DNA of 64,000 bases, taken from NCBI GenBank assembly GCA_965649825.1, contig OZ287701.1, forward strand, positions 857,101-921,100, read 5' to 3'. Every line of letters begins with the position of its first letter. The stretch's first letter is position 1. The notes under the pieces are model-generated. The model saw nothing but the letters and a program-made list of their open reading frames with translations, made no database searches and was not told the origin of the DNA. Below are positions 20,991 through 55,877 of the stretch, in pieces. This DNA is from Penicillus capitatus. Taxonomy: Eukaryota > Plantae > Chlorophyta. The translations under genes and the position numbers were made by a program.

Positions 20991-21199
20991 CTTGATTATC
21001 GAGAGTTCAACTTTTGTCGCTTTTCTCGTCCAAGTGATTAATCGCGTCTAAAGACAAAGATGCGTTCATTGGTGACGAAAATAGACTGTTTATTTTTATC
21101 TATGCCCTGATGGAACGTGTTGCGCCGTAAAACATACCGAGGGCGATGACGCAAAGATGACGACATTTAGGGCAAGAACACGACGGGGACGTTCTCGAC

Positions 21200-31392: not shown

Positions 31393-31650
31393 TGATTCGT
31401 GAATCCAGTATGGAGGTGTTCGATCATGCGCAGAACTCTTCAAACGTATGTTGTTGTTGTTTGTTGTTCGATTTCAACCTGTTCTAGAAACGTTTGGACA
31501 TCAAGAAGCGTAATCAAGGCACATGTATCACGATTGCGCACGACGGTTGCACGACTTCTTTTTCGACGTTCTTCCCTGGCTGTGCTTTATTGGCCTGACC
31601 TGTGTCTCACAGAAACGAAGCGGAGGTTGCGTGAAGCCGGTCGGACGCCG

Positions 31651-33205: not shown

Positions 33206-33701
33206 AGGCAAGTACATATGTCGTTGTTGTCTTCTTTGATTCGATTGATCTTTTGCATCGACACCTTGTCAACCAGTGACCTTCTTCCCACCGTATTGTC
33301 ATTCTTGTGTCCCTTGTCCTTCAAAAACAAAGCCACAAGATCGCCATCGACGCTGACGCCTTTCGCCGGAGGAACAGAAAAATGGCGGCTGCGTCACGTC
33401 ACTGCCTTTTTGATATTACACTCAACGTCAACAAAGTCAAGAATAATAGCTCTTCTCTCCTGTGTGTACCTTCTTAGATGAAATGCTTAACCATTTGGTG
33501 CTTTCTTTCGAAGATTCAATGAGCTTTTATGGGTGTGCACAAAATAGACGCCATGTGCGATGCTAGATGCATGTCTGAGGGACCGCGAAACAGTTACAAA
33601 GAGGCAAAGTGTTCTCACTCGCGCGATCTCGCTGAGAATCTTCGCTCAAAAAAATAAACAAACAAGAAGAATCCATCCGCCAGACGTATGCGCTTAGAGG
33701 T

Positions 33702-35425
33702 TTAAGAAATCGATGTCCTTCGCGACTTTTCGTCAATGATGCGTTTTTCAGCAATCCCGAAACAGATAGCCGATGCCATGTAGCTCAACGGAATAATACA
33801 CATAGCATCTCTCAGGCCAATCTTGGGCTCCAGTGCTGCGATCAAGATCGGTCCGACACTGGCCAAGAGATTCCTTAGCGACAGATGTATGGCGGCGGCC
33901 GTCGAAACGGCATCGGCTGGACACGATTCTCGCACCATGATCGCACAGGAGGCACGCCAGCTTTCCAGGAACAGATAACCGAAGAGGAGATAGAGAAAGG
34001 AAGACGGATAGTCTGCCGCCTGAAAAGACATAAAGATCAGAGGCGATCCAAGCAACGTCCCACCAGACGTCAAAATAAAACGCGCATTGCGCTGCGATAG
34101 CCAATCCGAAAGAAGACTCCCACCCACGCCGCCCACGATGCCACTGATCGGTATAATTGCTGCCAGTAGAGGGGCATAGACACTCGAGGAGATGCCGTAA
34201 ACACGTTCGTAGAAAATAGCCTGCCAGGAAATGAGAGACCAGAATCCAATGTCGTTTAGAGAAGCTGCCAGTGTGGTGGCTCGAAAGCTCTTGTTCTGAA
34301 GAATGCTCTCGATCTTGGAGCGCATTTCTTGAATGCCTTGTTTCGGTCGTTCGGCCGGCAGCGATCGGTTCTGCTCACGCGGATCCTGTACCAATGCCAT
34401 GAGGAATCCAATTCCCAGTCCAGGAATGCCAACCCAAAAAAGCAAATCTCGCCAAGACGATGCGGATTGGGCCATTCCTATAAAATCGTAGTCAAAAAGC
34501 GGCGCCACAGTGGCCTGATCGCCCGTCACATACAGGAGAGACATAGACGTCACATCAAACTGATCCAGAGGGACGGTGTGTATACCCATCATCTCATGGA
34601 CACCGAATTTTACCAGGATCAAGGCGAGGAAGAACGACAATGCTCGGCCAATGTACAGCGCTGAATTATAGAGCGACATCGCCGTCGTGCCTTTATTGGG
34701 AAAGAGTTCAGGAATCAGTCCATAGGCAACAGGATTCTGCATCGACTGCGAAGCGGCCGTGGAAAGACGAACAAGAAGAAGGTCGCTGAAGGAAGTGGCT
34801 TTCGAGGCCAATGCAGTCACCACACTCCAACACACGATGCCAAACGAAAGCAGCTGCGGACGATTCATGCGATCGGCCAGGAAGCCAAACGGAATCTGCA
34901 TCAATGCGTAGACCATTGTGAAGCCAACCGTCAGAAATGCCCCTTGGCTGTCAGTAAGGGCCGAATCGGCAGCGATGGAGGGCAAGAGGGCAGGAATAGC
35001 AAATCCTGTGCTGCTGCAGTGAAGGTATGAGATGGTGCAGAGGCCCAGAATCCAGAGAGCATTTGCCGCTGTGGGGGTAGTCGTATCGGCTGGAATCTCC
35101 GTCGCTTCTTCAGCTGTGGAGAAACCCAAACCCTTCACATCTGCTGCGCCTATCTCGGATGCCGCCCTGCATAGACGCACGCTTCTGCGCGTGGTTTTGC
35201 GAGAAGGATGGACCTAAAGGTAGCACCGCTATGGGGATCATCAACCTCTATATATTCCACTTCGCTAAAATCGACGCTGCGTTCGACCACACTGAAAGGA
35301 ACATCGTCGCCCGTCGCCGCCCTTCCGATGCGCGGCGTCTGTTTTCGTGTCTGACGCGTCAGGCATTTCTGCTGCAGTGGCGTTAGCCGCCAGGGAAGAA
35401 AGAGGGCACTGCTCTGTATCATCAT
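33702..35425 (-). CDS. Major facilitator superfamily transporter, Spinster-like, with N-terminal extension
   Basis: About 12 TM segments and MFS motif A (GFLADRMNRPQLL). The upstream exon is joined by a 47-nt GT-AG intron at about 35167-35213. Confidence 0.9.
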
Positions 35426-35522
35426 ACGGGCGGGCGTTAATGAGAAGACGTGGCGAATCTCGTTCGTGAATGGTCCACCGCCCGCGCGACCCAGTTATTC
35501 GGTGACGCGTCAATCTCTGTCC

Positions 35523-37736
35523 ATGACGACGCCTCCTGGAATGCCGAACGCTCCGGCAGGGAGCTTTCCCCCACAGGGCACGCCGATACCGCGACCGGGA
35601 GCGATCCCTCTCCCGCCGTTTGTCACGCCGCCCGTCGCCGCGACATCTTACGGTCTCTCTGCGTCGTGTCTTGCTGAAGGAGACGACGCGAAACTGCTCT
35701 CTAGGCTTTCCGCCGCCCATGCATCCGATGATGGTACCTCCTGGTGCTGGACTGATGCCGCCAGTCATGCCGATGCCCCTTCCCACCGCAGCGGTCCCCA
35801 AGAGCACCGATGTCTACGTTGGCAAAATCGCAAACACCGTCGAGGACGAAACGATCAAAGTCCGACCCTCATCGCCTCCATCTCGCGATATGACCCTTCG
35901 CGCGCGGTGCAGCGTCTGTTAGAGGTATGTGGCGAAGTCAAATCATGGAAACGGGCAGAAGACCCAGACACACATCAGCCCAAAGCTTTTGGTTTCTGCG
36001 AGTTCGAAGAGGCCGAAGGCGTATTGCGGTAAGACCCGTGCAATGTGACAGCTCTCGGTCGAGCAGTGTGTCTAGTGCAACGCGTTTGCTGAACAATCTG
36101 AAAGTGGACAATCAGGAACTGCAGGCACGCAGCAGCAGTGCCACGTCGAAGTATGTCGACGCCTTTCAACGAGAGAAAGCAATGCGTGGAATAGAAGACA
36201 AAGAAGAAGGCGAGCACGTCGAGACGGAAGAACAGAAAGACGCGAAACTGATGGAACAGATCACGAAGATTCTGGACGAGCGCGAGGCGGAGAAGAGTAA
36301 AATGAAGGAGGAGGTGCCCCTGACGAAAGATCAGGATTCGGAAACGATGAGTCAGCGATCGCGCGACGTCGAGAGCGATCTGCGCGATCGACGATACGCG
36401 AGATACGGACGTGGATCGAACGATGCCCGATCGGAACGGGCACTGTCGCGTGATCGACGTGAGATGGAGATGTTGATTCGTGATGAAGAGGCGGCGTATC
36501 GTAAGAGACTGCAAGAATGGGAAAGCTACGAACGGTATCGCACAATCTCACTCTTTTATGGGTATTCTCACTGTTTTTGCGATTAGACGTATTGAGAAAG
36601 AGCTTCAACGAGAGAGCGACATCCAGAGGACATTGCAATCGGAACGGGCCCGGGCACGTCGCGTTGATTACTTGGAAGAATCGGATGATGAGAAGGAGTC
36701 ATGGGAGAGAAAGCCGTACAAGAATAGGTGCGAAAAAGTGTGAGAGAGATGTGTGATGTGTGTGGTAGTCGAAGGGCCGAGGTCCGCCGCAGGCGACGAA
36801 GGGAAGAAGAGGCCTGGGACGAAGCTGATCGACAACGCGAAGAGAAAGAGAACGAGATGAAACGACAGAAGTCTGAGGAACCGGAAGACATGGAAGTCGA
36901 CACCATACCCTCAGAAGAGCCCACACAACACGTACTCCATCATGCCCCGATCTCATAGCCGTCATCGTGATTGTTAGATGGATATCGAAGGCAGCAATGG
37001 AGTGCAAGCGACCGATTCTCAGGCGAATGTGGAGAAGGAGATGCAGCCAGAGGTTGTGACGGCAGGCTCCATTGCATTGACCCTTCAGCCGAAGAAAACG
37101 GCGAAAGCAGTGACTCCGGTTACCTCTTTGGAAAGCAGTGCGTTGAAAGATATCTTTGGCGATGAGGAAGAGGATAAGCCAAAGCGCGAAGCGGTTTGTC
37201 TCTCTGTTCGCAGAGATGTCAGATAACAGACATTACGTTTGTTTTAGAGGGGATTGGCTTTCTCTGAGATCGATACGAGACCGACACCAGATCCCAAAGA
37301 TGCCGCCAAGAATCTCATCGATGCGCTTCCCAAGACAAAAGACGAAGTCTACAAGTACTGCATTTCTCACTCTTTTTACACAACACTGACATCTCTCTTG
37401 ACAGCTATGCTATCAAGTGGGAGGCATATCAGTCCAATGTCGCCGGCGCCAAGATCGAGAGCTGGCTCAACAAGAAAGTATCCGAAATCCTCGGCTTCGA
37501 AGAAGCCAGTTTGACAAGTGTGTGACCATCCATCTATCCCTATGCCAGATGTGTGAGAAATATCTGTCACATCAGGTTTCATCATGGCTCAATTGGATCA
37601 ACATCAACCACCGAGTGCTTTGGAGAAGGAACTGGCTGAGGTGCTGGATGACGAGCAGCAGACAGAGACCTTCATCATCAAGCTCTACCGCACCGTCATC
37701 TATGAAACCGAAAAGGCAGCTGCTCTTGACACCTAA
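35523..37736 (+). CDS. RBM25: RNA-binding protein 25 (RRM + RE-rich region + PWI domain), multi-exon
   Basis: RRM VYVGKI...LLEVCGEVKSWKR...KAFGFCEFE, an Arg/Glu-rich middle, and C-terminal PWI-type LPKTKDEV...WLNKKVSEILGFEEASL...FIIKLYR. Confidence 0.9.
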
Positions 37737-39251
37737 TAACATTGGGGTACTCTTTACGATGTTCGAACTGCCTTTCTATGTGAAGAGTTCTTTGCTATCT
37801 CCCTCCCTGTCTTTGGCAACGAAGGCGTTCGTGAAACCTAGCCTATGCGAAAAACGCTTTCCAGGTCTGGAACTGTTTTCTCCGTATGATCTGTGCACTG
37901 CTCTGTCTGTAGTGACTCAAGGACTGTCCATACAGCAGAAGGCGGCATTTCGACAGTCGTGCTGTCACATCACCACTATCATCCCCACGTCCCCCACAGG
38001 TGTCACATCATCCGAACATCGCGCCGTCGCTTCTGTCGATGCGTCGTCGTCTATGTCTTCGACGATGTCATTCGTACATGCCTGGTAGACACGACTTCTG
38101 ACAGACAACGATCGGATTCTGATCACAGGAACGCTCGACGGCCACGTGCACGTTGTCAGGCGTCGATCTCCGCAACGACGCCTCCCATCAGATCGACGTA
38201 TACACAGAACGGGTATGGACATGGCTATTTGTTGGATACCTCGTGCATCGCATGAATGTCATGCCGAAAGAGAAGAGTGAGAGGATCCATTCACTCCTCT
38301 GTTATGATCACTAGCAGGGACGCCTTCGGTTACCAACCACAATAGCTGTTGTCTCTCCGCATGGCAGCATGAGCGCGGCATTGGTGTTTCAAAGGCACTT
38401 CACCTATCAGCACCACAGGGCAGAGTTCGTTAGTCTTCGGCCACATATCTCGCTATGACGGGCGAGTGAGATGACACCCAGCAGGAGAAAGTCATGACAG
38501 GGGTCACATTAGGCAAAGATGTGAGGTGGCAGGGATCGGAAGCATTTGCCGTGGCGCTGCCCTCAACCAGAACTCACGGAATGATCATGATCCTGCTCGA
38601 TGGTGGAATGCGCCAGCAATGGTCGTGCCTATGTTGAATGTGTAGGAACTGAAGATTGCGATGACCCAATTGCGCTGTGAGATCCTTTTCCTCTTTGCAG
38701 AAACGAACTGTAAGCTTAGTAGATATTCTCCTGCGTCTACGACTGCTACAAGAAGGGCACTGCTTACTGTTGGTTTTGGCTTCATTGGTGTTTGCGGCAA
38801 TGGCGAATGGTCTCCGCAATCCACGTCGCAGATCACGATGACATGCAACAAGACTGCATTGTATGTGTGCATGGCTTCAGACACAACCAATTCATTAAAC
38901 AACAGGTACACACCACTGAGGGTTGCTTCTGGGCTTCCTGTTGTGTGCTGTGTAAAACAAGTTGCTTAACAAAGGGTTTCTCCCTGCTGAGTATCTCTTC
39001 TGACACTTGAGTTCAATTGTTCTCTCTGTGGTGTTTTGATCACGATGGCAGCATGAGCAGCATGACATCTGTGCCTGATGTGACGTCACAGTTGTCGATA
39101 GCCGTGCGCAACGAGAGAATATAGGGGAAGAACGCAGCAAGATATCTTTTCATTGTCCATCTGACCCAGTCGCGTGGCGGAGGTCAACACTTGGCGGATT
39201 GTCGCCGACTTCGATGCGATGGGTGACGTCACGTCAACTTTTCGTTTGACG

Positions 39252-39969
39252 ATGTCGTCATGTGTTGCACCGCGATTCTCCATCCTTGGACTTCACCGTC
39301 AGCGCCCGGGCTGCTGCATTTCGCATCGTCCCTCGCGGAGATCCTATCAATGGCGTATCCGATCGATCACGCCGCCGCAATCGAGCGATCGCGAAATACG
39401 ATCCGAATCGCCAGACGTCAAAGAACGCGAAACTCGATCCTGTTCGTTTAACGCGATATTGGAAGAAGTCCGCGATACCCAGTCCCTTGGATCGCGCGGA
39501 GAGGGCTGGGTGCTCTCTGTGCTCCTCGCATGGATTCTGCTGCTCTTTCCACCCGTCCATCTCTTTGGTCTTATGAGAGCAACGGGTTGGATCTTGACCA
39601 TTGGTGGCATCGTGCTGTTCGTCTCCGGACTGCTCAGCCTCGGGCGGAACAACTTCCCTCTACCGCATCCTCGCAAAGAGGCATCATTTGTACAGCAAGG
39701 CATCTACGCTCATGTACGTCATCCACAATACGGTGGCATCCTGCTCCTGTCCCTCGGTATCAGCGCCATCACCCACAGCGAAGTGCGTCATCCCCTTGTC
39801 ATCTATGCCTTGCTGAGGGCTCCCTTAGACTCGGGCCCTGTTCTGTGTGCTGCTGTGGTTTGCGTTGGAGCGGCTAGTGAAATACGAAGAGCGTGTGTTG
39901 AGAGAACGATTCCGTGAGAGCGATGCCTATAGCGAAGGCACCAGGAAGTTCATTCCTGGCGTATACTAA
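39252..39969 (+). CDS. Second ICMT/PEMT-like membrane methyltransferase family protein
   Basis: RGEGW, PLPHPR...GIYAHVRHPQYGG, one short intron, then EERVL...Y...TRKFIPGVY. Confidence 0.85.
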
Positions 39970-40164
39970 GCGAAGATCGGCGTTTCGATTAACAGAGAGA
40001 TTCGCACATTTTCAATGGGGTTGCATCCACGGCGATACTCAGCTCTTGTCCTTCCTCTTGTTGCTCTCTTGCGTTAAAAATCAGATCCAATTGGATGGAT
40101 GCTCTCGCCAAAGGACGGCGACGATAACAACAACAATAACGAAAAAATAAACAGGCGTGTGTTT

Positions 40165-41354
40165 TTAGAAACATTTTCTGTGGACGATGGATGGACCCAT
40201 CTCATCAAATTCTTGCTTTCCGATCCACATGCTGCTGAAGGTCGAGAGCGATGCCAAAATGGAACCGCCGATCCAGACGGAGTACTTTCTCTCTGGCGGT
40301 GCCACGACCTTGATCTTGGCCGATGTCGGGGCCAATTCTGTCATCTCTTTGCTGACACGTTCAGCAATACCTAATCCCGAGCTGTCACATCACGGCTGAA
40401 TCAAAAGAGTGAGATCACACCTTGGAACATCGTTGTACCACCAGACAGCACCACGTTGGAGTAGAGTTCTTTGCGGATGTCCAAGTCACATCGCATGATG
40501 GAGTTGTAGCAGGTGGCATGAATACCGTCCGCTTCCATGCCGATGATACTGGGCTGGAACAGGACTTCGGGGCAACGGAATCTCTCACTGCCAACCGTAA
40601 TCACTTGGCCGTCTGGTAGTTCAAACGTCTTTTCAAGCTCAGAGCTGCTATCTGCATTTGCCAGTTCCGCATCGTAATCGAGCGCCACGTAACAGAGCTT
40701 CTCCTTGATGTCTCTGACGATTTCCATACCGGCCGATCCGGGGAATGTGTAACCGCGTTCCGTGAGAATGGTCTTGAGCTGCTCTGTCAGATCGCGTCCA
40801 GCGAGATCCAGACGCATGATGGCATGGGGCATGGCATAGCCTTCATAGATGGGCACGGTATGGGTGACACCGTCACCGGAGTCCAACACAATACCCGTTG
40901 TTCTACCCGAGGCGTAGAGCGACAAGACGGCCTGGATCGAGACGTACATTGCCGGCACGGAAAACGTCTCAAACATGATCTGCGTCATTTTCTCGCGATT
41001 GTTTTTCGGATTCAGCGGCGCCTCCGTCAACAAGACGGGATGCTCCTCAGGCGCCACACGCAATTCGTTGTAGAACGTGTGTTGCCAAATTTTCTCCATG
41101 TCATCCCAGTTCGTCACGACGCCGTGCTCAATGGGGTATTTAATCGTCAGGATACCACGCTTGGACTGAGCTTCGTCGCCCACGTAGTTATCTTTTTGCG
41201 CCGTGCCGACCATGATAGACGACGTCCCTGCGCGAGGACGCCCAACGATGCTCGGAAAAACCGCACGCGGTGCATCGTCTCCGGCAAAACCGGCCTTGAC
41301 CATTCCTGAACCATTGTCACAGACAAGTGCTGCTATCTCAGCCTCTTCTGCCAT
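40165..41354 (-). CDS. ACT: Divergent actin, 2 exons
   Basis: [65 protein letters not shown] and IVHRKCF. Intron at about 40371-40420. Confidence 0.97.
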
Positions 41355-42125
41355 GTTAATCGCACAAACAGTCGCTCAAGAAAGGCAAAACTCTGAACGT
41401 GGGTAAGGAATAGAGAACCGTTGTTAGGAATCGGTGTTCTTAAATGCGGCGCCTAGATGTCACGTCACCATTGAAAATACCGTCAACGATCATTCGGATC
41501 ACTTACAGGCGTATCGATAGCATGCCATCGATAAGTGGAACAGAGTTGTAGCGAGATCTCAGATGATCTAACTAAAAAGAAAGATAACAGCACGTGATTG
41601 AAAGAACACAATACAGCAGGCTTGTCATCCTTGGAGACGACGAAAAACAACCCTACACGTTCAGGCATCGCTGTACATGAGCCCCATGACTGCAGGGACA
41701 TACGTGTGCACCATCGATGTGCGTGTGTCTGTCCGATGCTTCACTCGTTTCTGCTCCATCATTACGGTAAGATTTAGGGTTAGACGATCTGGTGAGAGGC
41801 GATAGACTTCCTGAAGTGTGCCATCTCTTGGTGGCATCCACTCAGTGCTGTGAGACAGATATAGGCAGATTTATGGATGGGCTGGGCTGGGCTTACCGTG
41901 CGGTAATTTTTTCACTGCTCAACTTCACAGACATTCTTTTCTGTTCTTGATTGTTCCCACGCCCTCTCTTGAAAATAATCTGCAGAGGGGCAGTCGTTCA
42001 GGGCGATGGCAGAGTGATCGCACCGGTTCTCCGTTCCACGGCCGTTGTTCTCGGCACTCGTACATAGTTGTCCACGTTACCAATCTAAAATGTTGTGCCG
42101 TCGAGTCAATCTGACGATCACACAT

Positions 42126-43808
42126 TCAACAGAAAGAGTGAGATATGTTTGGGATGATAGAGTAAGGTATGACGATGAGATATCTGATATGGCCCTCAAA
42201 TTTGTGATGTATCTTCTTCGTTTGAGGAAAGGCAGCTTGCGCTTTGTACAGATCTTTGCCACCCTTCTCCATCTTCCAGCTGCCATTAAAAGCGCTGACA
42301 TTTCTGAACGCGGCAGAATCCAAGACAAACGTGCGTCCAGTCGGCGATGACGGAAACTGAACCTCCGGTAGATTTCCAAAAAACTTCGAAAAGGGATACA
42401 GTCGATAAACGAACTCTGCACCGAACACAACCAGATACCATACATGTCTAACGTCCTCCGCGACAACACCTGGCGTTTTGTATGGAGAACATTCCTCTGT
42501 GCTGCGTGGTGGTTCGGGTGAGATATCCGGCATGGATCTCAGCATCTCCGCAACGCTGTTATTCGATGCACTCACTCTGCGAGAGCGATCGGCTTGAGAG
42601 AGATCGGATGCCGACTCCAACCACTCGGCACTCCGTCCTCGTGCGCTTTCGATGATGGGTCGAATCAGTCCTCCTGCCCTCGTGGGCAATTCCTTCACAT
42701 TGCCCACCGTTCGTCTGCGTCTTGCAATTCGCCAATTGACGAATTTCGCCCTCCACGACTGAAAAGGCATCGACTCGGCGCTGTCCAGATCGCGGGTCAT
42801 GGGCGTCGTGGACTCGACGATGGGGTGCGGTGCAGCTGTTCTCTGGACTGATGGGTCGAGAGGCGGCCTCAAAACAAAGGAATCCGATGCAGACTGCTCC
42901 ACTCCATCAGCCGCTATCTCACCTGCCACAGCACAAAACGTCTGAACGTGATAGATGTACCAAAGAGTGATGGAGTGAGTCGTGGGGCAGTACGTGTCGA
43001 AGGTTCTTGCGACGACGGATCGTCTTTCGACCAAGACTTGAGACTCACGGATCCAACGGTGCTCTTAGAGGCGCCCGCCGAGAGGAAAGGAAACCCGTCG
43101 ACTCCAGCTCCAGCCGAGGAGGATGTTTCCGGCAGCGGTGCAAATTTGAAGGAATTCTCTGCTGCTGGTGGCGGAGCTGTGGCTTTCATGGCCTGCAATC
43201 TTTGGAAGAGCTTGAAAGGACTTGGAGTTGCCAGCAACGAAGATTCCACCTACCAAGAAGCTATGAAAACGCAAGGAGGAAGGCGACATTTGCAGACGGC
43301 AAAGTCCTCTTGTAGACTGCGAGGGACTTCCAACTGCGGGACGTATCTTTCAGCAGCATCGGCAGCTGTTGTCATTTGGTGGACGGGGCGGTCCATGAGG
43401 AACGACGACGGAAGAGACGCACTCAGCGACGACGACGCGAGACAATCATGAGCATGATCATGGCTCGGAGACGCGTGGCTTCGATGGGACGCGTGGTATG
43501 GGACGGTTGACGTCTGTAAAGGTCGAAGCAGCGAAGGACGAAGTGTCTGGGAGAATCCAGTGTGAGTCATGCAGGTACCAGAAGCCGCCATCGAGAAACG
43601 ATGATTCGCGTTGCACAGGTGGCGTTTTATGACAGACGCCGAGATAACGAACTTCCTCAAAGCCAACGGGTGTAATACCACAGGTCAGCAGAAAGCCGCA
43701 TCGGTCGATCTCTTTCACCTCGTTCATGCTTTTCTTCGGCAGTTCTGCGGGAGCATCTGACGCAGGCAGGATTCTATACGACGTACTGTTACAAGGGTAA
43801 AGAGACAC
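42126..43808 (-). CDS. Unknown Ser/Pro-rich multi-exon protein, divergent from the Crypton-like gene
   Basis: Plausible GT-AG introns at about 43250-43297 and 42915-42952 join minus-strand ORFs in frame. Substitutions versus the 4-kb paralogue fall mainly at third codon positions of this frame. Ends are uncertain. Confidence 0.5.
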
Positions 43809-43866
43809 GGAGCTTTCGAGCGGAGATCGGTTTGAATGGCGCCCGTCTCAGAATTGGATACATTCG

Positions 43867-46800
43867 GTGCGATCTTTGTTGTGGACGGCGGTGTGGCGAA
43901 GGTGTTGTGTTCTGAATAGACTGTGGACGAGTGCGTTTGTTGCGCAGCAACAGCCGGGGTTTGAATGGGGAGAGTATGTGGCGGATGTGCTGCGTCTGCC
44001 GGGTCATCAGCTTGAGGGATGGCCAGAGCTCGTGCGCCGTATGTACGAAAAACTCCAAGAACTCGATCTCCGCGCTATTTTGAGCGCGTCGCGTCGGAGA
44101 TGGAGTGAACGTTTTGGTATTCTGCCGAAAAAGGCGACGGAAACGCCGGGCAGTATGCCGAGTCGACATACCGGGGGACCTTCGATGCTGGCGAGCGTCG
44201 GACGTCCTGAGACAGGACTTCAGCGACAGCTGATGGACATCGACGGGCCGGAAGCTCCGGAGGGTTTGACGAGAAGCGACGCCGTCGCCGAGCGACACGC
44301 TATCGTCAACAGCGACGTGGCGCCTGTTACAGGATACGGTGGAAATGATGACGTCATGGAGACGACGCTACCGGGCAACGGCGACGGCGACGAAGAAGAT
44401 GCGCTATTGCCTCTAGAAGGCGACGAGGATGGAGACCGCGATCTGCCGTTCTCTGGACAGCGCGGAGGCGACTGTGGTAGAGATGGAGCCGATGGCGAAG
44501 AAGAGCCGCCAGACGACGACGGTGCATCATCCATCGAGACCTCGATAACAGACAAGGTCTTCTTGTAGATGAACCGGATTCCAATCGAGGACCGGCGACG
44601 CCTTGTCCACCTGAGAAAGCCACGGGACAGGCGCGTATAATGGAGGGACGCTCGCGCTCGCGTCATCCCGTTTTGAAGTATTTCTTGGATGATATGGTTC
44701 TCGGACTGGGTATGATGCGATCCGAAGTCGAAAAGCGCTATATCAATGACGAGGGCGGCGGACACGAGATATCACTCGATCAGAAGATTCGCCTGATCAA
44801 GAACAAGATCACGCATCGCCTGACGACCCATCGCTGCTACATTCGCACGGCGAATCTCTTTTTGCTCTGGCTGAATGAAGAGGATACGAATCTCTGGAAG
44901 GATTCCGGCATTCTTCTGGCGACACAGCACAACATCTATGCATTTCTTGAGGACTACCGCACCGGCAAGATTCGTCCGACGGGGACGGAGCCTTCCATCG
45001 CACAAGTGCTGGACGGAACGGCACGCTTTGTGCGGAAGACGTCGAAGTTGCCCCTCTCTGCAGCCAATGGGGCAAAACTCATATCGGCGCTTTCTTTCAT
45101 GTACGATGCCCAGCAGACCTTGCTCAATGCCGTTCGGGTTGAAAGTCTTCGAAGCTACCGCACATTTAATCTGTGGGAGAGCAATCTTCAATACGCCGAA
45201 ACAGATCGCCGCCACGGGTGAGAGAATCGACCCGGTCGCTCAAATCGATACACGATGTCTTCTTTCCAGGTCCTTTGATGATCGTCAGCGTAACGTCTTG
45301 GCGACGGAGTGTCCACTGGGAGCGAAGAAACGCCAGAGCGTGCATTTGGTGCTGGAGGATTCCTGGCTGGGCAATCGCAATCGTGCGATGACTTTGAGCC
45401 AAGCGTTCAGTGTGAGTCGATTCGATGAGCTGTCGAAATGGTCCATCGCCGACCTCCATGCATTCACCTATTCCTCCGATCTCCCCACGGTCGGTGAACA
45501 GGACATCAATGTCATCTACGTCACACAGCCACTGCACAAGAACCTCAAAGTGACACCCCAATTCGTTCCGCCTTCCCTCCACATCTCGCGTGTGGCAGGA
45601 TGGAAGACCGCCAGATGAGAAGCTCATTATTCGACACAAAGACATTCTGCTCTGTCCACTGAGCGCCGTAGCGATGATGATGTTCGATCGCTTTGTTCTC
45701 TCCAACGAACGTCCCTTCGATCTCACCAACTTCCAATCATGGTCTGTCCCCTGTCACGCCATGCCTCTCAAACTGACTGTCGTCATAGGTACAATGTCAA
45801 AGTGTTCCGCAATACATTGGATGCGGACAAGGCAGTGAAGAGTAGTACGGTGTACACGCAACGCAAAGAGATGATGGAGAATACGGCCACCGCGACCAAT
45901 GGCTGCGTCAACCATTACGATCGCAAACTCGGTGCCCTGATCGCCCGTCTTCACGGAATCGGCAACAGCGAGTTGAAATCGTTGGGTCTGTGGGATTCCG
46001 CCATCCTCGACCGTCACTACTCGAAGTACGCCCTCCCGGATACCGTTGCAAAGCTCTCCGGATTCCAAGACGGCCAGCATTACTTCCTCCCCAGAGCCAA
46101 AGCAGATCCGATGGAGTTCCAGGAGCTCCATGGAGGGGAAGAGATGTTCAGCACATTCTTTCCGTTTCTCGACGAGTCGACGGTCTTCCAGTCCGTCCTG
46201 GAGCAACGTGCCGAGGGCAACAATACGTGCTTCAATGTTTACCAGACGCTGCATCTGATGCGTTTGATCTTTTGGCAGGATCTGCCACACTATTTCTCCC
46301 TCTACCCCCAGCTCCGCGTCTTCAAGTGCGCGGCATTGACAGATCACTGGGGAACATTCCTCAAGTGGTGTGAATTCTGCAACGAACGCGTTGTTCATGG
46401 CGAAGCTGCCCTCGCCCGCAACTTGGGCGCAACAGACGAAGGCACGGCGGCCGTCGATGGGGAAGAATGGAACTCCTGGCGTCAAAAGGTGGATCTGTCC
46501 GTACGCGAACTCCGCAGCCTAACGCAAGCCAACTCGGCAAAGCTGGATCGTTTGCTGCACGCCGTGGAATCGCACGGGGCTTTCGGCAAGCGCAAGAGAG
46601 AAGTGGGCGAACCCGAGCTGAAGAAGTGCCTGACGAATGGCGGACGTCATCTGCTGCGAAAGCTGCGCGATCTGAACGACATGTCGATCAAGGACGTCTA
46701 TGAGGAATGGAATGTGGCTGTCGTGAGCGAAGGCGTCGAGTTCTGCAGCCTGAAAGAATTCGAGCGCCGCCGTACGGAGCTTAAGGAGCAGTACCGCAGC

Positions 46801-46980
46801 GATCAGCTGAAAACGGCCGTCCACAGACGCAGAAACCTCGCGGCATTCGTCGAGCAGACGGCGACAGAACTGGGCGATCTCGATCGCGCCTTCAAGTGGA
46901 TCGAAGATCTTCAGCTCAAACTCGGACACGGAAAGAAATGCACACTCTACAAACTCTGGCAACACATTAACGCGTTCTGA
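43867..46980 (+). mobile_element. Crypton-type tyrosine recombinase gene (NDC10-II-like YR domain + GCR1_C-like C-terminus), intact, 4 predicted introns
   Basis: Spliced ORF contains RNRAM...SRFDEL...DL (catalytic R), HKN (K), RHKDILLCPLSA.A...F.RF, NHYDR..GA (HxxR), LGLWD (W) and RHYS (Y). C-terminal SIKDVYEEW...SLKEFE...RRR resembles GCR1_C. Introns at about 44557-44615, 45219-45270, 45550-45598 and 45742-45788 all keep frame. Start codon uncertain. Confidence 0.85.
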
Positions 46981-47097
46981 ACAGCAGCACTGTGCGGAAA
47001 CGCATTTTTGACCAAGCGATGCAAAAAAGGACAAGTGTTAGAGGAGAAAGCGGACCATGTGGACGAGATATCGTTTTGTGTTGGGAATGATTTGTGG

Positions 47098-48526
47098 TTA
47101 GATGGCTTTGGCCATATCCAATAGCGTCTGCACATCGCGTAAACTCTGTCGTCTGTCGTCCATGAATCTGTCCAGGGCTTCCAGCTCCTTCGACAGTTCT
47201 CTGAACGGAAGGGCGATGTTGGAATGCAAAGGTCGAAAGAATGTCTCACCTGAATTCTCGCCGATCAGTGTCCATCGCGCTTCTCTGCTGCAGAAGAAGC
47301 GATCTTCTCTCTTTCAGCTCTCCCTCGGACGCTTCCGCACCGTCGAGAACCTCTTCGACTTCGCGAACGAAGTCCTTCTTCTGCACGAGTTCACGGAGCA
47401 GACCGGGCGGCGGATCTTTGCCGTCGGCCAGGACTTGTGCCAGACCGATGATGTCGATCGCGCCGCTTTGCGATTGAGTGAACGCTTCGTACATGCGTCC
47501 CAGCGCATTGCGTTTCCTGAACACTCAGATCCGATGAAGCGTCGTACAGCTTGAGCCTGTCAGATGGCACAGGACCTGTCCTTGGAGGTACCGCCTGCAG
47601 CTGGATGCAGAATGCCCAGGAGCTCATCCAGCAGACGGAGGGATGGAGTCGCGTTCTGTCTCTCGACTTCCGCACGGACGCGTCGCCAAATCATTCGCAA
47701 TCCTTCGGAGGCGCTCGCATCCTAAATGCATCCATTCTAACAGCACACCCGCGGCGATCTCGCACTTCATAACGCTCGGCGCACTCGATTCTGCGCCAGA
47801 ACTTCTCGAGTAGATTCTCGTCCAGATAGTCTCGATACTCTTCGAGCTTGTCCTCGAAGAGACTCCCTAAGAAGAGATGCTGTGTCTTCCGATCGTCGGT
47901 CGACAGAGCGTTGCCTGCATTAACGAGATCGACGATGATCTTTGTCGTTCTTCGCTCTGGATCCAACTGGGCAATGCAGATGAGACAGGCAGAGTCATCT
48001 CGGATCGTACCTTCTTCACATCGACGTCCTCGTCAGGCGGACCCATGTTCAGCAGGGGATCGGGTACGTACTCAGGAAGGTCTTCTTCCTATTGGCACAA
48101 CGAATGTGTGTGAAGCACGATGCCGATGCTCCGTTGGAACGTACATTGACGATTTCTGCCTGCTCGGAATCTTTATCGTCTGTCGGCTTGATGGCGAAAG
48201 ACACTTCGCGTGTCAGAAAGGGTCGCCGTGATGTTCTCTTTCTGTTGGGTAGAAAGGGCGAAGGAGATGGAGGCTTGGCAGGAGTGACGGCTTTGAACAG
48301 CCTCGGCATTCGGTGAGCGGGAAGACCAGTGATTTGTACGACAGGACTTCTGTGGACGACGCCTCGTTGACAGGGATCGCCAACTTGTCGTCCAAAGCAC
48401 TTGTTTTCGTGTTAATAGATCACAGAAGATAGGACTAACGTGCGGTCTGGACACCAGTGATTGCGCTTTGGCTCGACAGAGATTGTTGCGGTCGGTGAGA
48501 CCTGACACACTTATCAGAGATGTCAT
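47098..48526 (-). CDS. PAC: PALE CRESS (PAC)-like plastid protein, multi-exon
   Basis: Transit-peptide-like N-terminus. The spliced protein contains ATPSLRLLDELL and KDFVREVEEVL, matching from memory the PAC motifs ATP.MRLLNDLL and DFVREVDALL. Confidence 0.7.
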
Positions 48527-48617
48527 GGACGCTACGAAGGTATAGGTTTGAGTTTTTCTGTCGAATTTGAGGGTACGTCGATACAGGATAACCGAAAAGA
48601 AGTGGAGTACGATAAGA

Positions 48618-51600
48618 TGAATCGAACGTCTTCTGTCCTCCACAAGACGTGTCTGCATCTCTCCGTTATGTTGTCGGAGACTTTCTGCAGAACTCTTCAT
48701 GGTCATAAGCAAGGACGCGGAGTTGTGATATCAAGCTTTATCTCTCGCAAAAGCTGCATCCATGACTGGGATATGCTCTCCTGGCAGGCAGGACACGTCA
48801 AATCAATTCACCTGCATTTAATGTCAACGACAACGTCCACGCATCTTTCTCCACTGCGAACTTTGTTACGAACTCTTGCGACGGTAAGTGCATCTGTTCG
48901 TTTCGGTGGCACGACGAGCGAAAACGCTTTGTCGTGTAGACCACAAGCGAACATGCAAGCCCGAGCTCCTGACGAAGGGCCCAGTGGCGTACAGCCACCC
49001 GGGTCGGAAATTAGTATTCAGCTCACATCCCAAAACGTTGGAAACGAAGAACGTCGCGACCTAATCCTTCTGCGCGGCGTTGTGAGTAGATACAACATTC
49101 ACAACACCAGGTCGCTGGTTGTCGCGTATAACGCGACCACGAATGAAAACGAACGCGCTGTCCTCCTTGGATGGCTGCGTAAGTACCACGAACGAAGGGA
49201 AGATTGCCTCACGCAAAAGGCTGTCCTTGAATATGCAGAACTGGTCAACATCGCTCCACGTTCCATCAGCGAGAAAGATATTCTGAAAAATTTGATCTGC
49301 GACCTTTGTTCCAGTATCCCAGTAGGAAACTTCCTTCCGCCGAACTTTGCCGCTGCCATCCACAGGGCACTTGTGCACGTCGATCCATCAGTGTATGGCG
49401 GAGTTGCGGAGCTAATGGTCGTGGCAAGGAAGCTTTTGGGAAGTCTGTCAGCGACACCGAAACTCGAAAGAGAGAACTTCTCGGTCCACAAAGGGACCTT
49501 TCTCGCACTTCAGCAAACCCTTTTCTTGTTTCTTAAAAGTAATCAAAGTGGAATCGACAAAGAAGAAAAGCAAGAGCTTCGTCAAGTCATTGCAACGAAG
49601 GAGAGAGTTTTGGAGCCATCGTGCAACTACTACCCTGTGAAGTTCCGTTTCCAAGTTCTTCGTCAAGCGGTTGAACGCCTCGAGGCAAGAAATGCTTCGC
49701 GTATCGCAGAAGTTTTTTTTATTACTCGTGGATGCTGTGGATCCGCGCACGTTTTACACTCTCTCCTGATGCTGGCATGCATTGATGTTTGTCCTGAGGC
49801 AATTCAGCGTGCATTCAGAAAGGCTCGAGTTGCTGTCGAAGACATGGGAGTGTTGAAGAGACCGTGGTTCGACTCGCTTTGGAATCTAATGGCAGCAAGG
49901 CTGGAAGCCGCAAAGGACGAAATGAAGCTTGACCTCTTTGGATCTGTGTGCAGTACCATAATAGAGAATCAACGAAAGATAAAGAACAGAGAAGAGTTAA
50001 AAGCGCTGAGATTTGGAATCATTGACGAGTTGGGCATGCTGGCAATCGAAGGATCATCGGAGAACGCTCGCAGAGAAGCTACAACCATGTTGTCGAATCT
50101 GGCAACGCAACAAGCAATCGGCGAAGGATGGATCGATGATGATGATGATGACATCCTGATCGCACTCCTGGATGTCATATACGCGGTGCGCATGACTGGC
50201 CAATATAACGAGAAGACTGAAGAAGCACTCACGGCCTTGTATGTATACTGCGATGGCTCTACCAGAGACGCGATGATGGCATGGTTGGAAGGAAAAAGCA
50301 TTGAAGAGAAGCTTCAAGCTGGAAGCTCGCCAGCAACTCAGCCAGAACATAGAGATTTATTTATTAAGACTCGCAGAGACGTTGGATACACTCCACCAAC
50401 TAAAGATGACTTAATGAAAACATACCTCAACGACGGTTTTGCAACGGTAATGTCCCGCGAAGATGAGCTTCCTGTGGTTGACTGTTTCGTTTCTGAAGGT
50501 GGCTTGTTTGCTCGACGAAGGTATCCCTAAGCACGTCAAGGCCATGAAGCACCACCTCGTCATCTTCGAAGAAATCTTAGAAGAACGAGATACCAGATCG
50601 AGAGATAGAATACACAGAATTATCCAGAGGTTGGAAGATTTGAAAGGCGAGTCTTCAAATCGTGGAAGAGATCAGGCGCAGGAACATTGTGAAAAGACAA
50701 GAGTCGCAAAATCCATTCTTCTGGAAGATTTGTTTAAGCGAAGATCTCTCGCATCAGGGGATCCAGAAAACGAAGTTCGAAGGGTGCTCCTCTATGGAAA
50801 CCCTGGATCCGGAAAAACATGCATCGCAAGAGTCATTGCATATAATTGGGCACTGGGAGAAATGGCACAAGACCTCGACGTCATTTACGTAGTGCCGGTG
50901 GGAGTTCTCAGCAGTGCGGAGCACAGTGGACATAAATGGACAAGACTCGAGGAAGCTGTGTCAGAGATATGCTTCTCTGAAAGCAAGCATACTTTCAACA
51001 ACGAAGACCTGATCGCTCAGGCGGAACGCGATCTCGACGATTCTTCCACACTGCTCGTGGTTGATGGTCTGGATGAGGCGAATGATCATGCAATGGAGCT
51101 CTTGTCTACCATATGGGAGCGACCCTGTAAGGTATTGCTTCTTTCTCGTCCGTACAACACGAGAGACGTGGAAACCCGTGTCGACGTTCTGGTGGAGTGC
51201 CTCGGATTCAACGATGAGCAACTGCGAGACTACATAGAGAGCGAATTGTCTGAGAAAGAGGCTCCGAGGCTCATCCGCTTTATCGAAGACTCCGATGCCT
51301 TGTGGGAGATGGCACACGTTCCAGCAACGGCAAACCTTCTCTGTTCCTTATCGAAGAAGCACGGCACTGCGATTGAAGAACGAGGAAAGGGAGCAAGCCT
51401 GTTCCAATTGTGCAACGAGATAACGAACTTTACCTGGAAAAGGTTCAAAGAGAAGCCGACGGCAAGAAAAATACAGAAAATGGAACTCTTTCAGAATCTG
51501 GAAAGAATTGCTTTCGAATCGCTTCGCAATGGACTAGTTCTTATCGACGAAACGTTTGTTACGCAACACACAGCGTCGAGAAATGCAGCTAGAAAGTTGA

Positions 51601-54600
51601 AAGAAAGCGGACTCCTCTTGCCTGTTTTGGAGGACCAAGCGTATAGGTTCCCTCAACTAACTTTCCAGAAGTATTTTGCTGGAAGACACATTGCAAAGAA
51701 TTTACAAAGAAAAGGATTAGATGGGGAAAGAGTAGTGGCGTTTGTTCGAGAAGAAAAATACAATCAGAAGCATGCTGCGACACTTTCATTCGGTATGCAC
51801 GCATTTGCAGAAAGCCGAGGAAAAGATGCGCTGCAAGAAATGCTTTCGATTGTCGACGAAGAACCCGTCGAGGTTTTCGGTATACAACACTTTTTTCTGA
51901 AGATGCGAATCCTCAATGCAACCTTAGAAGAGACACATGAAGATGATTTGAAAGAACTTTTGGAGGACAAACGCGCAACGAAGCTCGCCGAAAGCGCTCG
52001 TCTGCTGCTCGAGCGCACTATCAATGATGCTGAAATTCGTAGAATCGTTGTCCAAGAGTTCCAACAATCGTCTCGTGTTTTGAAGAAATTTCCTCAAGTT
52101 CTCGACAAAACTATCAAAGAAGTAAAGAAGACGCTAGCATGCGTGCATAACTTGACGCAGAGAGAGCTGGACAAAGTCACAGATGTCTTAAAGCTCACGA
52201 ATCATTATGTGGAGCAAAGCAACACAATAATTAAATCCGTACTGGAAAAAGTTGACGAACCCGTTAGTCCGTGCATGACAAAGGAGTACATCAGAAGATT
52301 GAATTCTATTGCCAAACAATTGACCCATCTCGCCGGCAAGTTTCTGCCAAAGCTGGCTGAGAAGTGCGGCGATGAAGACACGGCCGTGCGTCGAGACGCG
52401 ATGACGGCGATCAGCAGTGTGATCGCAGCGGCGCCCCATCACGCCGGCGAGTTTCTGCCGAAGCTGGCTGAGATGTGCGGCGATGGAGACACGGCCGTGC
52501 GTCGAGACGCGATGACGGCGATCAGCAGTGTCGTCGCAGCGGCGCCCCATCACGCCGGCGAGTTTCTGCCGAAGCTGGCTGAGATGTGCGGCGATGGAGA
52601 CACGGCCGTGCGTCAAGACGCGATGACGGCGATCAGCAGTGTGATCGCAGCGGCGCCCCATCACGCCGTCAAGGTCCTGCCGGCACTGGCCGAAGGGTTT
52701 GGAGACGGAAACTTAGCCTTGCGTGAAGCAGCAATGTCTGCGATTGGAAGTGTCGTCTCAGCGGCGCCTCAACACGCCGACAAAGTCCTGCCGAAGCTGG
52801 CCGAGAAGTGCGGCGATGGAGACTGGGCCGTGCGTCGAGACGCGATGATGGCTCTCAGCAGTGTCGTCTCGGCGGCGCCTCAACACGCCGCCGAGTTTCT
52901 GCCAACGCTGGCTGAGGGGTGCAAAGACGGAGACGAGAACGTGCGTGAAGCAGCGATGTCGGCGATTGGCAGTGTCGTCGCGGCGGCGCCCAATCACGCC
53001 GGCGAGTGTCTGCCGACGCTGGCCGAGGGTTGCAAAGACGGAGACGGGAACGTGCGTGAAGCAGCGATGTCGGCGATTGGCAGTGTCGTCGCAGCGGCGC
53101 CCCATCACGCCGGCGAGTTTCTGCCGACGCTGGCCGAGGGTTGCAGAGTCAGAGACGTCGTGTTCGTGCGTCGAGCAGCGATGTCGGCGATTGGCAGTGT
53201 CGTCGCCGCGGCGCCAAATCACGCCGGCGAGTTTCTGCCGAGGCTGGCCAAGGGATGCAAAGACAGAGACGGGAACGTGCGTTATGCAGCGATGTCGGCG
53301 ATTGGCAGTGTCGTCGCGGCGGCGCCCAATCACGCCGGCGAGTTTTTGCCGACGCTGGCCGAGTGGTGCAGAGACAGAGACCGGAACGTGCGTCGAGCAG
53401 CGATGTCGGCGATTGGCAGTGTCGTCGCCGCGGCGCCAAATCACGCCGGCGAGTTTTTGCCGACGCTGGCCGAGTGGTGCAGAGACAGAGACCGGAACGT
53501 GCGTCGAGCAGCGATGTCGGCGATTGGCAGTGTCGTCGCCGCGGCGCCAAATCACGCCGGCGAGTTTTTGCCGACGCTGGCCGAGTGGTGCAGAGACAGA
53601 GACCGGAACGTGCGTCGAGCAGCGATGTCGGCGATTGGCAGTGTCGTCGCCGCGGCGCCAAATCACGCCGGCGAGTTTTTGCCGACGCTGGCCGAGTGGT
53701 GCAGAGACAGAGACCGGAACGTGCGTGAAGCAGCGATGTCGGCGATTGGCAGTGTCGTCGCGGCGGCGCCCAATCACGCCGGCGAGTGTCTGCCGACGCT
53801 GGCCGAGTGGTGCAGAGACAGAATCAGGAACGTGCGTCGAGAAGCGATGTCGGCGATTGGCAGTGTCGTCGCCGCGGCGCCAAATCACGCCGGCGAGTTT
53901 CTGCCGACGCTGGCCGAGGGGTGCAGAGACAGAGACGGGAACGTGCGTTATGCAGCGATGTCGGCGATTGGCAGTGTCGTCGCGGCGGCGCCCAATCACG
54001 CCGGCGAGTTTCTGCCGAGGCTGGCCAAGGGATGCAAAGACAGAGACGGGAACGTGCGTTATGCAGCGATGTCGGCGATTGGCAGTGTCGTCGCGGCGGC
54101 GCCCAATCACGCCGGCGAGTTTCTGCCGAGGCTGGCCAAGGGATGCAAAGACAGAGACGGGAACGTGCGTGAAGCAGCGATGTCGGCGATTGGCAGTGTC
54201 GTCGCGGCGGCGCCCAATCACGCCGGCGAGTGTCTGCCGACGCTGGCCGAGGGTTGCAAAGACGGAGTCTGGAACGTGCGTCGAGAATCGATGTCGGCGA
54301 TTGTCAGTGTCGTCGCCGCGGCGCCAAATCACGCCGGCGAGTTTTTGCCGACGCTGGCTGAGGGGTGCAGTGACGGAGACTCGGCTGTGCGTGATGCAGC
54401 CATGTTGGCGATTGGAAGTGTTATCGCGGCAGCTCCTCAACACGCCGCCGAATTCCTGCAGACGCTTGCTAATCGGTGCGGCGACGGAAACCCTTCTGTG
54501 CGTCGAGCAGCGATATTGGCGATTGGCAGTGTCGTCGCGGCAGCTCCTCAACACGCCGCCGAGTTTCTACCGACACTGGCAGGCGGGTGCGCCGACGGAT

Positions 54601-55877
54601 ACCCGTCCGTGCGTCACGCAGCGGTGTTGGCAATTGGCAATGTTGTCGCGGCGGCGCCTCAACACGCCGGCGATTTCCAACCGATGCTTGACGAAGGGTG
54701 CTGCGACGATGACCCTTCTGTGCGTCGATCAGCGATATCGGCAATTGGCATTGTTGTCGCGGCGGCGCCTCAACACGTGGGCGAGTTTCTGCCGTTACTG
54801 GCTAAGGGATGCAGCGACTTGTACTTCTCTGTGCGTCGAGCAGCGATTTCGGCGATTGGCAGTGTCGTCGCGAATACATCACACATCCTGACGGCACTAT
54901 TTCAGTTACTAAAGACAGGATACGAAGATAAAGATTTCTTTGTGCGTCAGAATGCGATAGAGAACGTCGGCAGAGCTTTAAGGGAGAGACAGTTTTCTGA
55001 CCGCCAACTGCTACCGATTCTGAAGAGTGGTTGTAACGACAAAGACTTCTTTGTGCGCCAAACCGCAATAGAAGCTGTCTGCAAAGCCATCATAGTCGAG
55101 CCAAATCTTTCTGGCGGATTGCTGAAGCTTCTTGACGAAGAGTGCATTGACAAGGTCTATTTTGTGCGTTGGAGTGCAATGGAAGCCATGGGCAAGGCCT
55201 TAGAAGCAACGTCACATCTGACGGATAGAGGTCTGTCGATTCTTGAGAAAGGTCATCGCGACGAAGATTTCTTTGTACGTCTGAAAGCAATAGATGCCGT
55301 CGGCTCGGCAGTCGCTGCAGCGCCAGAACTCGCTGGTGAACTCATGCCAATACTCGAGAGAGGGTGCGTGGACGAACACAGCGATGTTCGTGCTAATGCG
55401 CTCAAGGCCGTAGAGGCAGCGCCGCAATTCGTCGTTAAACTCTTATCGATGCTCGAGAACCAGCGCATGGATGAACACAGCGATGTGCGTTCGAGTGTGT
55501 TGAAGGCTATTGGGGGAGTTGTTGAGACGGCTCTACATCTCGTGGGCGAACTGCTGCCAATGCTTCAGAGACGGTGCGACAACGAACAGTCCTTCCCCGT
55601 TCGACGAAATCCAAGAACAATGCCAAATGAATCGAGACTAACTTGGATTACTCCTCCATCAAAGATCTCTGCTCTAATGAATAAGTTCTTGCTCGTTTTT
55701 ATTCAAAACTCATTTACACTGGAACCAACTACGGAAGACGAGAAAGTTTCTCTTGTGCTACATGCATCATCATCGCATGAGATTGGGAACTGGGAAGGGG
55801 AAGCTCTCGACAAGCATCTCGAGCATTTGAGAAGAGATTTTGAAGATAAGTTTCCGGGTTTGTTGAGAAGCTTGTAG
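48618..55877 (+). CDS. NLR-like STAND protein: helical N-terminal domain + NACHT NTPase + about 29 HEAT repeats
   Basis: A 52-nt GT-AG intron (50447-50498) joins ORF 48548-50530 to ORF 50463-55877 in frame. Walker A LYGNPGSGKT (50796-50819), Walker B LLVVDGLDE, and winged-helix-type FPQLTFQKYFAG, followed by the HEAT array. Start codon uncertain (48618 or 48951). Confidence 0.9.
52340..55580 (+). repeat. Coding tandem array of 111-bp (37-aa) HEAT repeats
   Basis: The period was measured directly (agtttttgcc at 53341 and 53452). About 13 central units are near-identical and the flanking units are progressively more diverged. Confidence 0.97.

Follow-up and report, generated by a model that had tools for sequence, protein, structure and literature searches.

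An intact CryptonF-type tyrosine recombinase and its convergent neighbor form a two-gene segment, absent from the same site of a sibling genome, in the nuclear genome of a probable bryopsidalean green alga

The 64-kb stretch of DNA analyzed here (the window) is part, in reversed orientation, of the 776,749-bp contig ctg340446_32x_l of ENA metagenome assembly ERZ25074695 and carries on its forward strand, at 43629 to 46980, a spliced gene of seven exons that encodes a Crypton-type tyrosine recombinase of 1005 amino acids in one uninterrupted frame. Convergent to it on the minus strand lies a multi-intron gene with the label PAC-like (47098 to 48309), and both genes are contained in a variable segment of ca. 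4.8 kb (43587 to 48391, plus strand) that occupies part of the intergenic DNA separating two divergent host genes and is missing from the same site of a sibling genome. Among eukaryotic DNA transposons, no class is less well understood than the Cryptons, whose ends are hard to define and whose activity, to our knowledge, has been directly observed only in Chlamydomonas. With a probability of about 60%, we think that the recombinase gene belongs to an intact, autonomous, low-copy element of the CryptonF type that spans this putative Crypton segment and carries a passenger gene. The gene content of the window is eukaryotic (actin, arrestin, a major facilitator superfamily [MFS] transporter, ICMT, a NACHT+HEAT gene, and a Ty3/gypsy element) with very short GT-AG introns of 42 to 74 nt, and scans for Rfam families and tRNAs over the window gave no matches. 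We take the DNA to be nuclear and its host to be, in all likelihood, a green alga of the Bryopsidales, the latter judging by the nearest relatives of the recombinase itself; these relatives, from Caulerpa lentillifera and Bryopsis, agree with the green-algal origin that had been proposed from the sequence.

The original prediction had assembled the recombinase from pieces beginning at 43867 across four GT-AG introns, which do exist and join the pieces into a single frame (44557 to 44630, 45218 to 45269, 45550 to 45598, and 45742 to 45788, all on the plus strand and of 74, 52, 49, and 47 nt, respectively). Position 43867 is merely the start of an open reading frame at a GTG. Because upstream exons are matched by the orthologs in C. 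lentillifera (protein g4242.t1 of 901 amino acids, hereafter P0152) and on L006, a 52-kb Logan contig from a more distant relative, the gene begins 238 bp farther upstream with two extra 5′ exons that introns of 59 and 53 nt connect to the first of the predicted pieces. Exon 1 (43629 to 43683; MTDAEITNFLKANGCNTT) opens with the first ATG in frame and is conserved in L006 (MTDTEISEFLSANGSSAS), while exon 2 (43743 to 43866; VLREHL...KGKETRSFRAEIGLNGARLRIGYIR) matches both P0152 (GRESKSYRVDVNHRGLKHRIGYIR) and L006. Exon 3 (43920 to 44556) encodes a conserved N-terminal module up to ca. 44115, followed by an acidic, disordered linker (44116 to 44556), and exon 4 (44631 to 45217) a helical domain resembling a core-binding domain that is modeled with a predicted local distance difference test score (pLDDT) above 90. 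The catalytic domain starts in exon 5 (45270 to 45549) with R518 (45418 to 45420) and K558 (45538 to 45540), continues through exon 6 (45599 to 45741), where intron position and phase are as in L006, and is completed in exon 7 (45789 to 46980) with H651 (45913 to 45915), R654 (45922 to 45924), W677 (45991 to 45993), and the nucleophile Y686 (46018 to 46020). The same plus-strand exon encodes a coiled coil (46348 to 46575) and a GCR1_C-like DNA-binding tail (46654 to 46977) and ends at a TGA (46978 to 46980) that coincides with the predicted stop, 117 bp from the convergent stop at 47098 to 47100; a divergent minus-strand gene is present upstream, as had also been proposed. In alignments with homologs from Caulerpa and Bryopsis, none of the last three exon junctions shows a gap. 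Of the six introns, five have the same position and phase in L006, the sixth falls in the variable acidic linker, and most positions are also common to Caulerpa.

Just 5′ of the ATG, the window (43609 to 43631) and L006 (8243 to 8264) share a conserved block that is preceded by an acceptor-like AG (...YAG|GTGGCGKTTTATG). This AG could be the end of an intron in the 5′ untranslated region, with the upstream exon lying either outside the 42-bp left end of the segment or across a circle junction.

Several independent comparisons place the protein among Crypton recombinases. Pfam recognized NDC10_II and no other family (including DUF3435) at 39.4 to 39.5 bits against a gathering cut-off of 26.3, covering amino acids 519 to 790, and an exhaustive HMMER search retrieved 383 relatives, the best being proteins of C. 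lentillifera and Bryopsis sp. KO-2023 (64% identity over 758 residues for P0152). NDC10_II was found in 75 and GCR1_C in 29 of 90 relatives, from which a profile was built that matches yeast Ndc10/Cbf2 (E = 5e-21) and, weakly, Cre; this profile was required for the match, as phmmer searches of PDB sequences with the protein itself returned nothing. A word-indexed search with the complete spliced product gave no matches, probably being swamped by the acidic linker, and no relatives were found in a scan of JGI metagenomes. All six catalytic-type residues listed in the original prediction are present and are conserved across the family, namely R518 in 53 of 55 sequences, K558 in 59 of 59, H651 in 76 of 79, R654 in 79 of 80, W677 in 82 of 83, and Y686 in 83 of 84. 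The AlphaFold2 model has a mean pLDDT of 76.9, with the core and the tail above 90, and Foldseek matched it to Ndc10 (3e-7), Flp (9.5e-5), Cre (target-normalized TM-score up to 0.67), and XerH. The proposed GCR1_C-like tail stayed below the Pfam threshold (15 bits versus 23, E = 0.032) and was recovered by profile–profile comparison, in which hhalign aligned it to canonical GCR1_C tails over 89 columns with a probability of 97.7% (E = 2e-12) and the C-terminus of yeast Ndc10 aligned to it as well; by these profiles, the tail is a divergent GCR1_C domain. The gene thus stands as the intact, intron-containing Crypton-type recombinase that it had been taken for, with a tyrosine recombinase core and a GCR1_C-like tail. 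We place it in the CryptonF type because this architecture, a tyrosine recombinase core (NDC10_II) and GCR1_C on one protein, is the one described for CryptonF by Kojima and Jurka (PMC3212892), an assignment that draws on shared domains.

The remaining parts of the protein are less easily classified. The N-terminal module (amino acids 1 to 125) is conserved among orthologs and matched no known family in Pfam or PDB profile searches, and the linker is predicted to be disordered (pLDDT below 50) and is only 34% identical to that of L006. An AP2-like DNA-binding sheet in exon 2 (YKGKETRSFRAEIGLNGARLRIGY) was suspected and would be no more than a conjecture, since this part has neither a Pfam nor a PDB profile match and is modeled with a pLDDT below 50. 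One Bryopsis paralog (contig L013, BSYQ01000015.1) has an additional C48 peptidase, a combination already described for CryptonF-2_PS (PMC3212892). This paralog is adjoined by a gene with a weak USP7_ICP0_bdg match, and such a gene also adjoins the L006 ortholog (6450 to 7409), which may be a coincidence or a recurrent association.

The PAC-like gene reads from an ATG at ca. 48309 to its stop at 47098 to 47100 with an approximate 5′ exon structure, and the gene model is supported by a homolog of 286 amino acids (P0159) that covers it to 100% at 55% identity. The label itself could not be verified, as there was no Pfam match and the single homolog found is unnamed. Its coding sequence lies wholly inside the variable segment and adjoins the recombinase in L006, too. 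We would see in it a passenger rather than a function of the element.

The sibling genome is represented by two contigs of assembly ERZ26696514, L010 and L011, which were found via an identically encoded actin exon product and share 99.1% identity with one another along 13.7 kb. Both are colinear with positions 30408 to 43586 of the window (85.9% identity over 13.3 kb), lose this homology at 43586, 43 bp before the ATG of the recombinase, and continue directly into a homolog of positions 48392 to 48457, with a homolog of the NACHT open reading frame at 48548 farther along in L011. Everything from ca. 43587 to 48391, that is, the recombinase and the PAC-like gene, is precisely absent from both contigs, and tblastn found no trace of either gene in them within 10 kb of the junction. 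At this junction, the flanks of the sibling meet at one CCGAAGCC (...TGCAGGTA CCGAAGCC CTCGATGTCGTGT...), whereas the segment of the window lies between a left copy, CCAGAAGCC (43578 to 43586; ...TGCAGGTA CCAGAAGCC GCCATCGAG...), and a right copy, CCAAAGCAC (48392 to 48400; ...CTTGTCGT CCAAAGCAC TTGTTTTCGTGT...), at which homology to the empty site restarts; on the left, the crossover zone could reach ca. 43594. The direct repeat is imperfect and 8 to 9 bp long, and an equally good match occurs in 0.5% of random position pairs 4814 bp apart. Flank alignment had been suggested for finding empty sites and short terminal repeats, and it did find both: The window flanks, joined computationally, align continuously with the two empty sites. 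Neither terminal inverted repeats nor long direct repeats were detected in a search of 43540 to 48440. The recombinase starts 42 bp inside the left end and the PAC-like gene ca. 85 bp inside the right end. The original prediction had seen little room for element termini between the recombinase and its neighbors; this does not hold, because the PAC-like gene is inside the mobile segment, and the inclusion of both genes explains where the apparently missing room had gone.

Two observations concern the surroundings of this site. At 3974 to 4440, the window contains a partial paralog of the upstream "UP" gene with its 5′ intergenic region (70% to 79% identity), and its clear homology to the copy at 43.5 kb stops at GGTACC, precisely where the element junction lies. 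Within it, the counterpart of the left flank (ca. 4259 to 4440) seems to read through the junction as an empty site would, with a right side that aligns weakly. In the sibling, 490 bp past the empty-site junction (L010 7245 and L011 7246), the two otherwise 99.1%-identical contigs differ completely, as L011 runs into the NACHT locus and L010 into an inverted homolog of the aldo-keto-reductase region at 25.0 to 27.4 kb of the window; the target site of the recombinase thus has a structural variant nearby.

Orthologs of the recombinase were found in four data sets, i.e., the window, L006 (71% identity), C. lentillifera (P0152, 64%), and a further contig, L003. In L006, the recombinase and the PAC-like gene form a pair colinear with positions 43617 to 47969 of the window, yet it is flanked on both sides by genes unrelated to those in the window, and a block of ICMT, arrestin, kinase, and MFS genes lies nearby in a different order; alignments of the L006 flanks with the window were too diverged to define the ends of the element there. 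A second contig of the window's own assembly, L004, has a decayed recombinase relic of 185 bp upstream of a paralogous NACHT gene. The loci of the Bryopsis paralogs showed neither a PAC-like neighbor nor extra identical copies, and neither codon usage nor GC content at third codon positions set the recombinase apart from host genes or the Ty3/gypsy element. What the window contains, the sibling site lacks, and L006 has at another location is not just the recombinase but the two-gene segment as a unit.

The original prediction had left the choice between an active Crypton and a domesticated recombinase. We favor a mobile element because the corresponding site of the sibling cleanly lacks the two-gene segment, because the same gene pair stands in a different context in L006, and because the window's own assembly has a decayed recombinase fragment at a second locus; the domesticated alternative keeps part of its weight (see below). 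As a mechanism, we propose, after the Goodwin model and the observations in Chlamydomonas, that the recombinase would bind DNA with two of its parts, the helical core domain toward the N-terminus and the GCR1_C-like tail, and would cleave with Tyr686, helped by R518, K558, H651, R654, and W677. Strands would then be exchanged between the short core that borders the element and a target of almost the same sequence, CC(A)GAAGC. Integration would leave the element flanked by two copies of the core, and excision, presumably as a circle, would restore a single one; both the circular intermediate and any present-day activity are predictions of this model. The junction fits the model of a Crypton that recombines a short core with a near-identical target and leaves one core behind on clean excision. 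Such a short-core model has been confirmed with CryptonF-1_cRei, an experimentally observed active element of Chlamydomonas that prefers gene-proximal intergenic DNA (PMC9977147), a preference matched by the location of our segment between divergent genes. The report of this active element in a green alga also makes the earlier impression of few reports from this lineage outdated (PMC9977147). Our literature search returned no report of Cryptons for Caulerpa, Bryopsis, Ostreobium, or Bryopsidales generally.

Like the CryptonF elements of fungi and oomycetes and CryptonF-1_cRei, the segment encodes one large protein with an NDC10_II core and a C-terminal GCR1_C domain in an intron-containing gene, lacks terminal inverted or long terminal repeats, has a short direct repeat or core at both ends and one core at the empty site, and combines a gene-proximal intergenic insertion with low copy number. 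Unlike them, the recombinase includes an additional N-terminal module, which is conserved, and a linker that is long and acidic, and its GCR1_C tail is too divergent for the Pfam threshold; the core is imperfect and ca. 8 to 9 bp instead of 4 to 6 bp (PMC3212892), a second, host-like gene with several introns lies on the opposite strand, and just one intact copy was found. Cryptons of such architecture are thus already known, one of them active in a green alga, and it is the passenger gene, the apparent single copy, and the long conservation that are unusual here. With the tyrosine recombinases Flp of the yeast 2-micron plasmid and Cre of phage P1, the protein shares the predicted two-domain fold and the R-K-H-R-W-Y site, and the expected chemistry would, by analogy, proceed via a 3′-phosphotyrosine intermediate and a Holliday junction. 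It differs from both in having no detectable sequence similarity beyond the motifs, no recognized 13-bp inverted-repeat recombination site at the ends, and additional N-terminal, coiled-coil, and GCR1_C domains. The locus offers a complete and intact element, an empty site defined to the base, a candidate recombination core, and orthologs across siphonous green algae.

A number of points weigh against a mobile element. The right flank on which the empty site depends is short (66 to 92 bp at ca. 76% identity) and fast-evolving, with 1.1 kb of unalignable DNA following it in L011. The junction signature would also be expected from a microhomology-mediated deletion in the sibling lineage, and with 14% divergence from the sibling, neither insertion nor excision need be recent; the difference may have arisen by a gain here or by a precise loss there. 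That the sibling carries the element elsewhere in its genome is only hinted at by the cluster of last-exon products at 90% identity, which has three members, the same number as the arrestin cluster (the window and the two sibling contigs). Just one contig of the entire collection encodes the exact last-exon product of 413 amino acids, so that one intact copy was found, and there was no second copy within the window. Between the window and L006, the recombinase retains 71% amino acid identity with a nonsynonymous divergence (dN) of 0.22, and its catalytic domain 83% with a dN of 0.11; both dN values are below those of the neighboring host genes over the same species pair, which are 0.44 for arrestin (51% identity) and 0.30 for the MFS transporter (62%). 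Synonymous sites are saturated in all three genes (proportion of synonymous differences, pS, ca. 0.77 for the recombinase). The introns that the recombinase shares with L006 (five of six) and mostly also with Caulerpa are what one would see in a vertically inherited host gene.

Several of these points would be explained if the gene were a host-domesticated and still catalytic Crypton recombinase, linked to the PAC-like gene and maintained as a single copy in Bryopsidales by selection on the host, which we consider the main alternative, if a rather unlikely one. It had been our first choice, since synteny, a low dN, and intron conservation spoke for it, and was set aside once the empty sites appeared. 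On this account, the absence from the sibling would reflect a 4.8-kb deletion between 8-bp microhomologies or general rearrangement of the region rather than transposition, and the region is indeed unstable anyway, given that L010 and L011 diverge 490 bp from the junction. Domestication would further agree with the occurrence of orthologs in all four data sets, with a dN of just 0.22 (below arrestin and MFS) despite a pS of 0.77, with the conserved positions and phases of introns, with the adjacency to the PAC-like gene kept in L006, with the detection of a single intact copy, and with the extra copy on L004 having decayed like a redundant duplicate. A deletion, however, would have to remove two conserved genes together and exactly as the unit that travels in L006, where both flanks of the pair differ from those in the window. 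The likely paralogous site within the window seems to be empty as well, which would make the empty state ancestral. The adjacency of the PAC-like gene is internal to the moving unit, and this removes the main argument for domestication. The synteny and selection analysis that had been proposed as a means of deciding gave a split answer: Purifying selection and one intact copy were found, but the locus is not fixed, with the gene absent at the sibling site and different outer flanks in L006. A single copy under purifying selection would be equally expected of a functional low-copy element. All previously described Crypton-derived host genes, moreover, have lost catalytic residues (PMC3212892), and here six of six are kept. 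The recombinase resembles such genes, i.e., NDC10/CBF2, GCR1, MSN1, and HOT1 of yeast and likewise the animal DUF3504 genes ZMYM2-4, QRICH1, KCTD1, and KIAA1958, in its Crypton descent, single copy, strong purifying selection, and orthologs across species. It departs from their fixed loci and lost catalytic residues in its complete site and in a presence/absence locus with a recombination-type junction. If it were domesticated after all, it would be the first Crypton-derived host gene known with a full catalytic site.

A mobile element with a more specific history is conceivable, too. In this scenario, which we find improbable, a single-copy, cut-and-paste Crypton would have captured a PALE-CRESS-like gene for plastid biogenesis, so that a passenger needed by the host and the recombinase travel together; the captured gene would then, with the same reservation, be expected to carry a transit-peptide-like N-terminus. 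Such a capture would account for the long conservation of the recombinase, as if it were a host gene, despite its changing genomic position, and the result would be a miniature "addictive" integrative element, similar to Starships or to integrative and conjugative elements (ICEs), that the host is unable to lose. Like the Starships of Pezizomycotina, the segment has its recombinase gene at the extreme 5′ end, facing inward and followed by passenger content, and is of low copy number. Starships, which in fungi have short terminal repeats and specific targets, are far larger (27 to 700 kb) and use a DUF3435 "captain", whereas here 4.8 kb with one passenger gene and a CryptonF/NDC10_II recombinase are found in a green alga. 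If the gene is indeed a passenger, small transposons with tyrosine recombinases can move host-like genes of algae as Starships do in fungi, and the locus would provide a compact, naturally intron-bearing system for site-specific recombination.

Still less probable is a stranded element, that is, a Crypton that inserted after the split from the sibling and is now immobile, with a frame left intact by recency or chance. The single copy, the lack of recognizable terminal structures beyond the short core, and the fact that nothing at the locus indicates present-day activity would all suit such a remnant. What speaks against decay is that a recombinase gene of seven exons and a multi-intron PAC-like gene are both uninterrupted, that every catalytic residue and splice site is intact, and that the catalytic domain is 83% identical to that of the L006 copy despite saturated synonymous sites, which requires that selection on the lineage continued. 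That the protein is an Ndc10/Cbf2- or Gcr1-like DNA-binding protein with a structural role at kinetochores or in transcription, using the fold for binding only, is very improbable. Ndc10/Cbf2 is indeed its best match by Pfam, PDB sequence, and fold, and its tail is GCR1_C-like, but the catalytic site, which has been lost from both Ndc10 and Gcr1 (PMC3212892), is complete here (R-K-H-R-W-Y) and the best conserved part of the protein, and the sibling lacks the gene at the orthologous site.

Beyond the segment, the window contains several repetitive or duplicated features. The NACHT gene on the plus strand (50463 to 55877, together with 48548 to 50530) has an open reading frame of 1804 amino acids in which a NACHT NTPase is followed by ca. 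23 tandem HEAT-type repeats of 111 nt (37 amino acids), and the central units are 94% to 96% identical to one another, an unusually homogenized array in an NLR-like gene. Its paralogs or orthologs on L004 and L011 are just ca. 75% to 76% identical to it, with flanks at 86%. On the minus strand at 56401 to 60923 lies a Ty3/gypsy retrotransposon with apparently intact open reading frames for gag-protease and for reverse transcriptase, RNase H, and integrase; it is a locus-specific insertion, as the colinearity of L004 with the window resumes on its far side (56219 and 61074). An aldo-keto-reductase-like segment is present in three diverged copies (19836 to 20993 and 22979 to 24078 on the minus strand, 25006 to 26460 on the plus strand), of which two are inverted relative to the third and account for the inverted repeats I1 to I5. 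A gene segment is duplicated at 1 to 815 and 17186 to 17997 (85% to 93% identity, 17.2 kb apart), and both copies match one block of L006 (1000 to 3070). Degenerate repeats of ca. 99 nt with 63% to 80% identity, rich in GATGAAG and GACGAC, extend from 6323 to 7041 and probably encode an acidic repeat protein.

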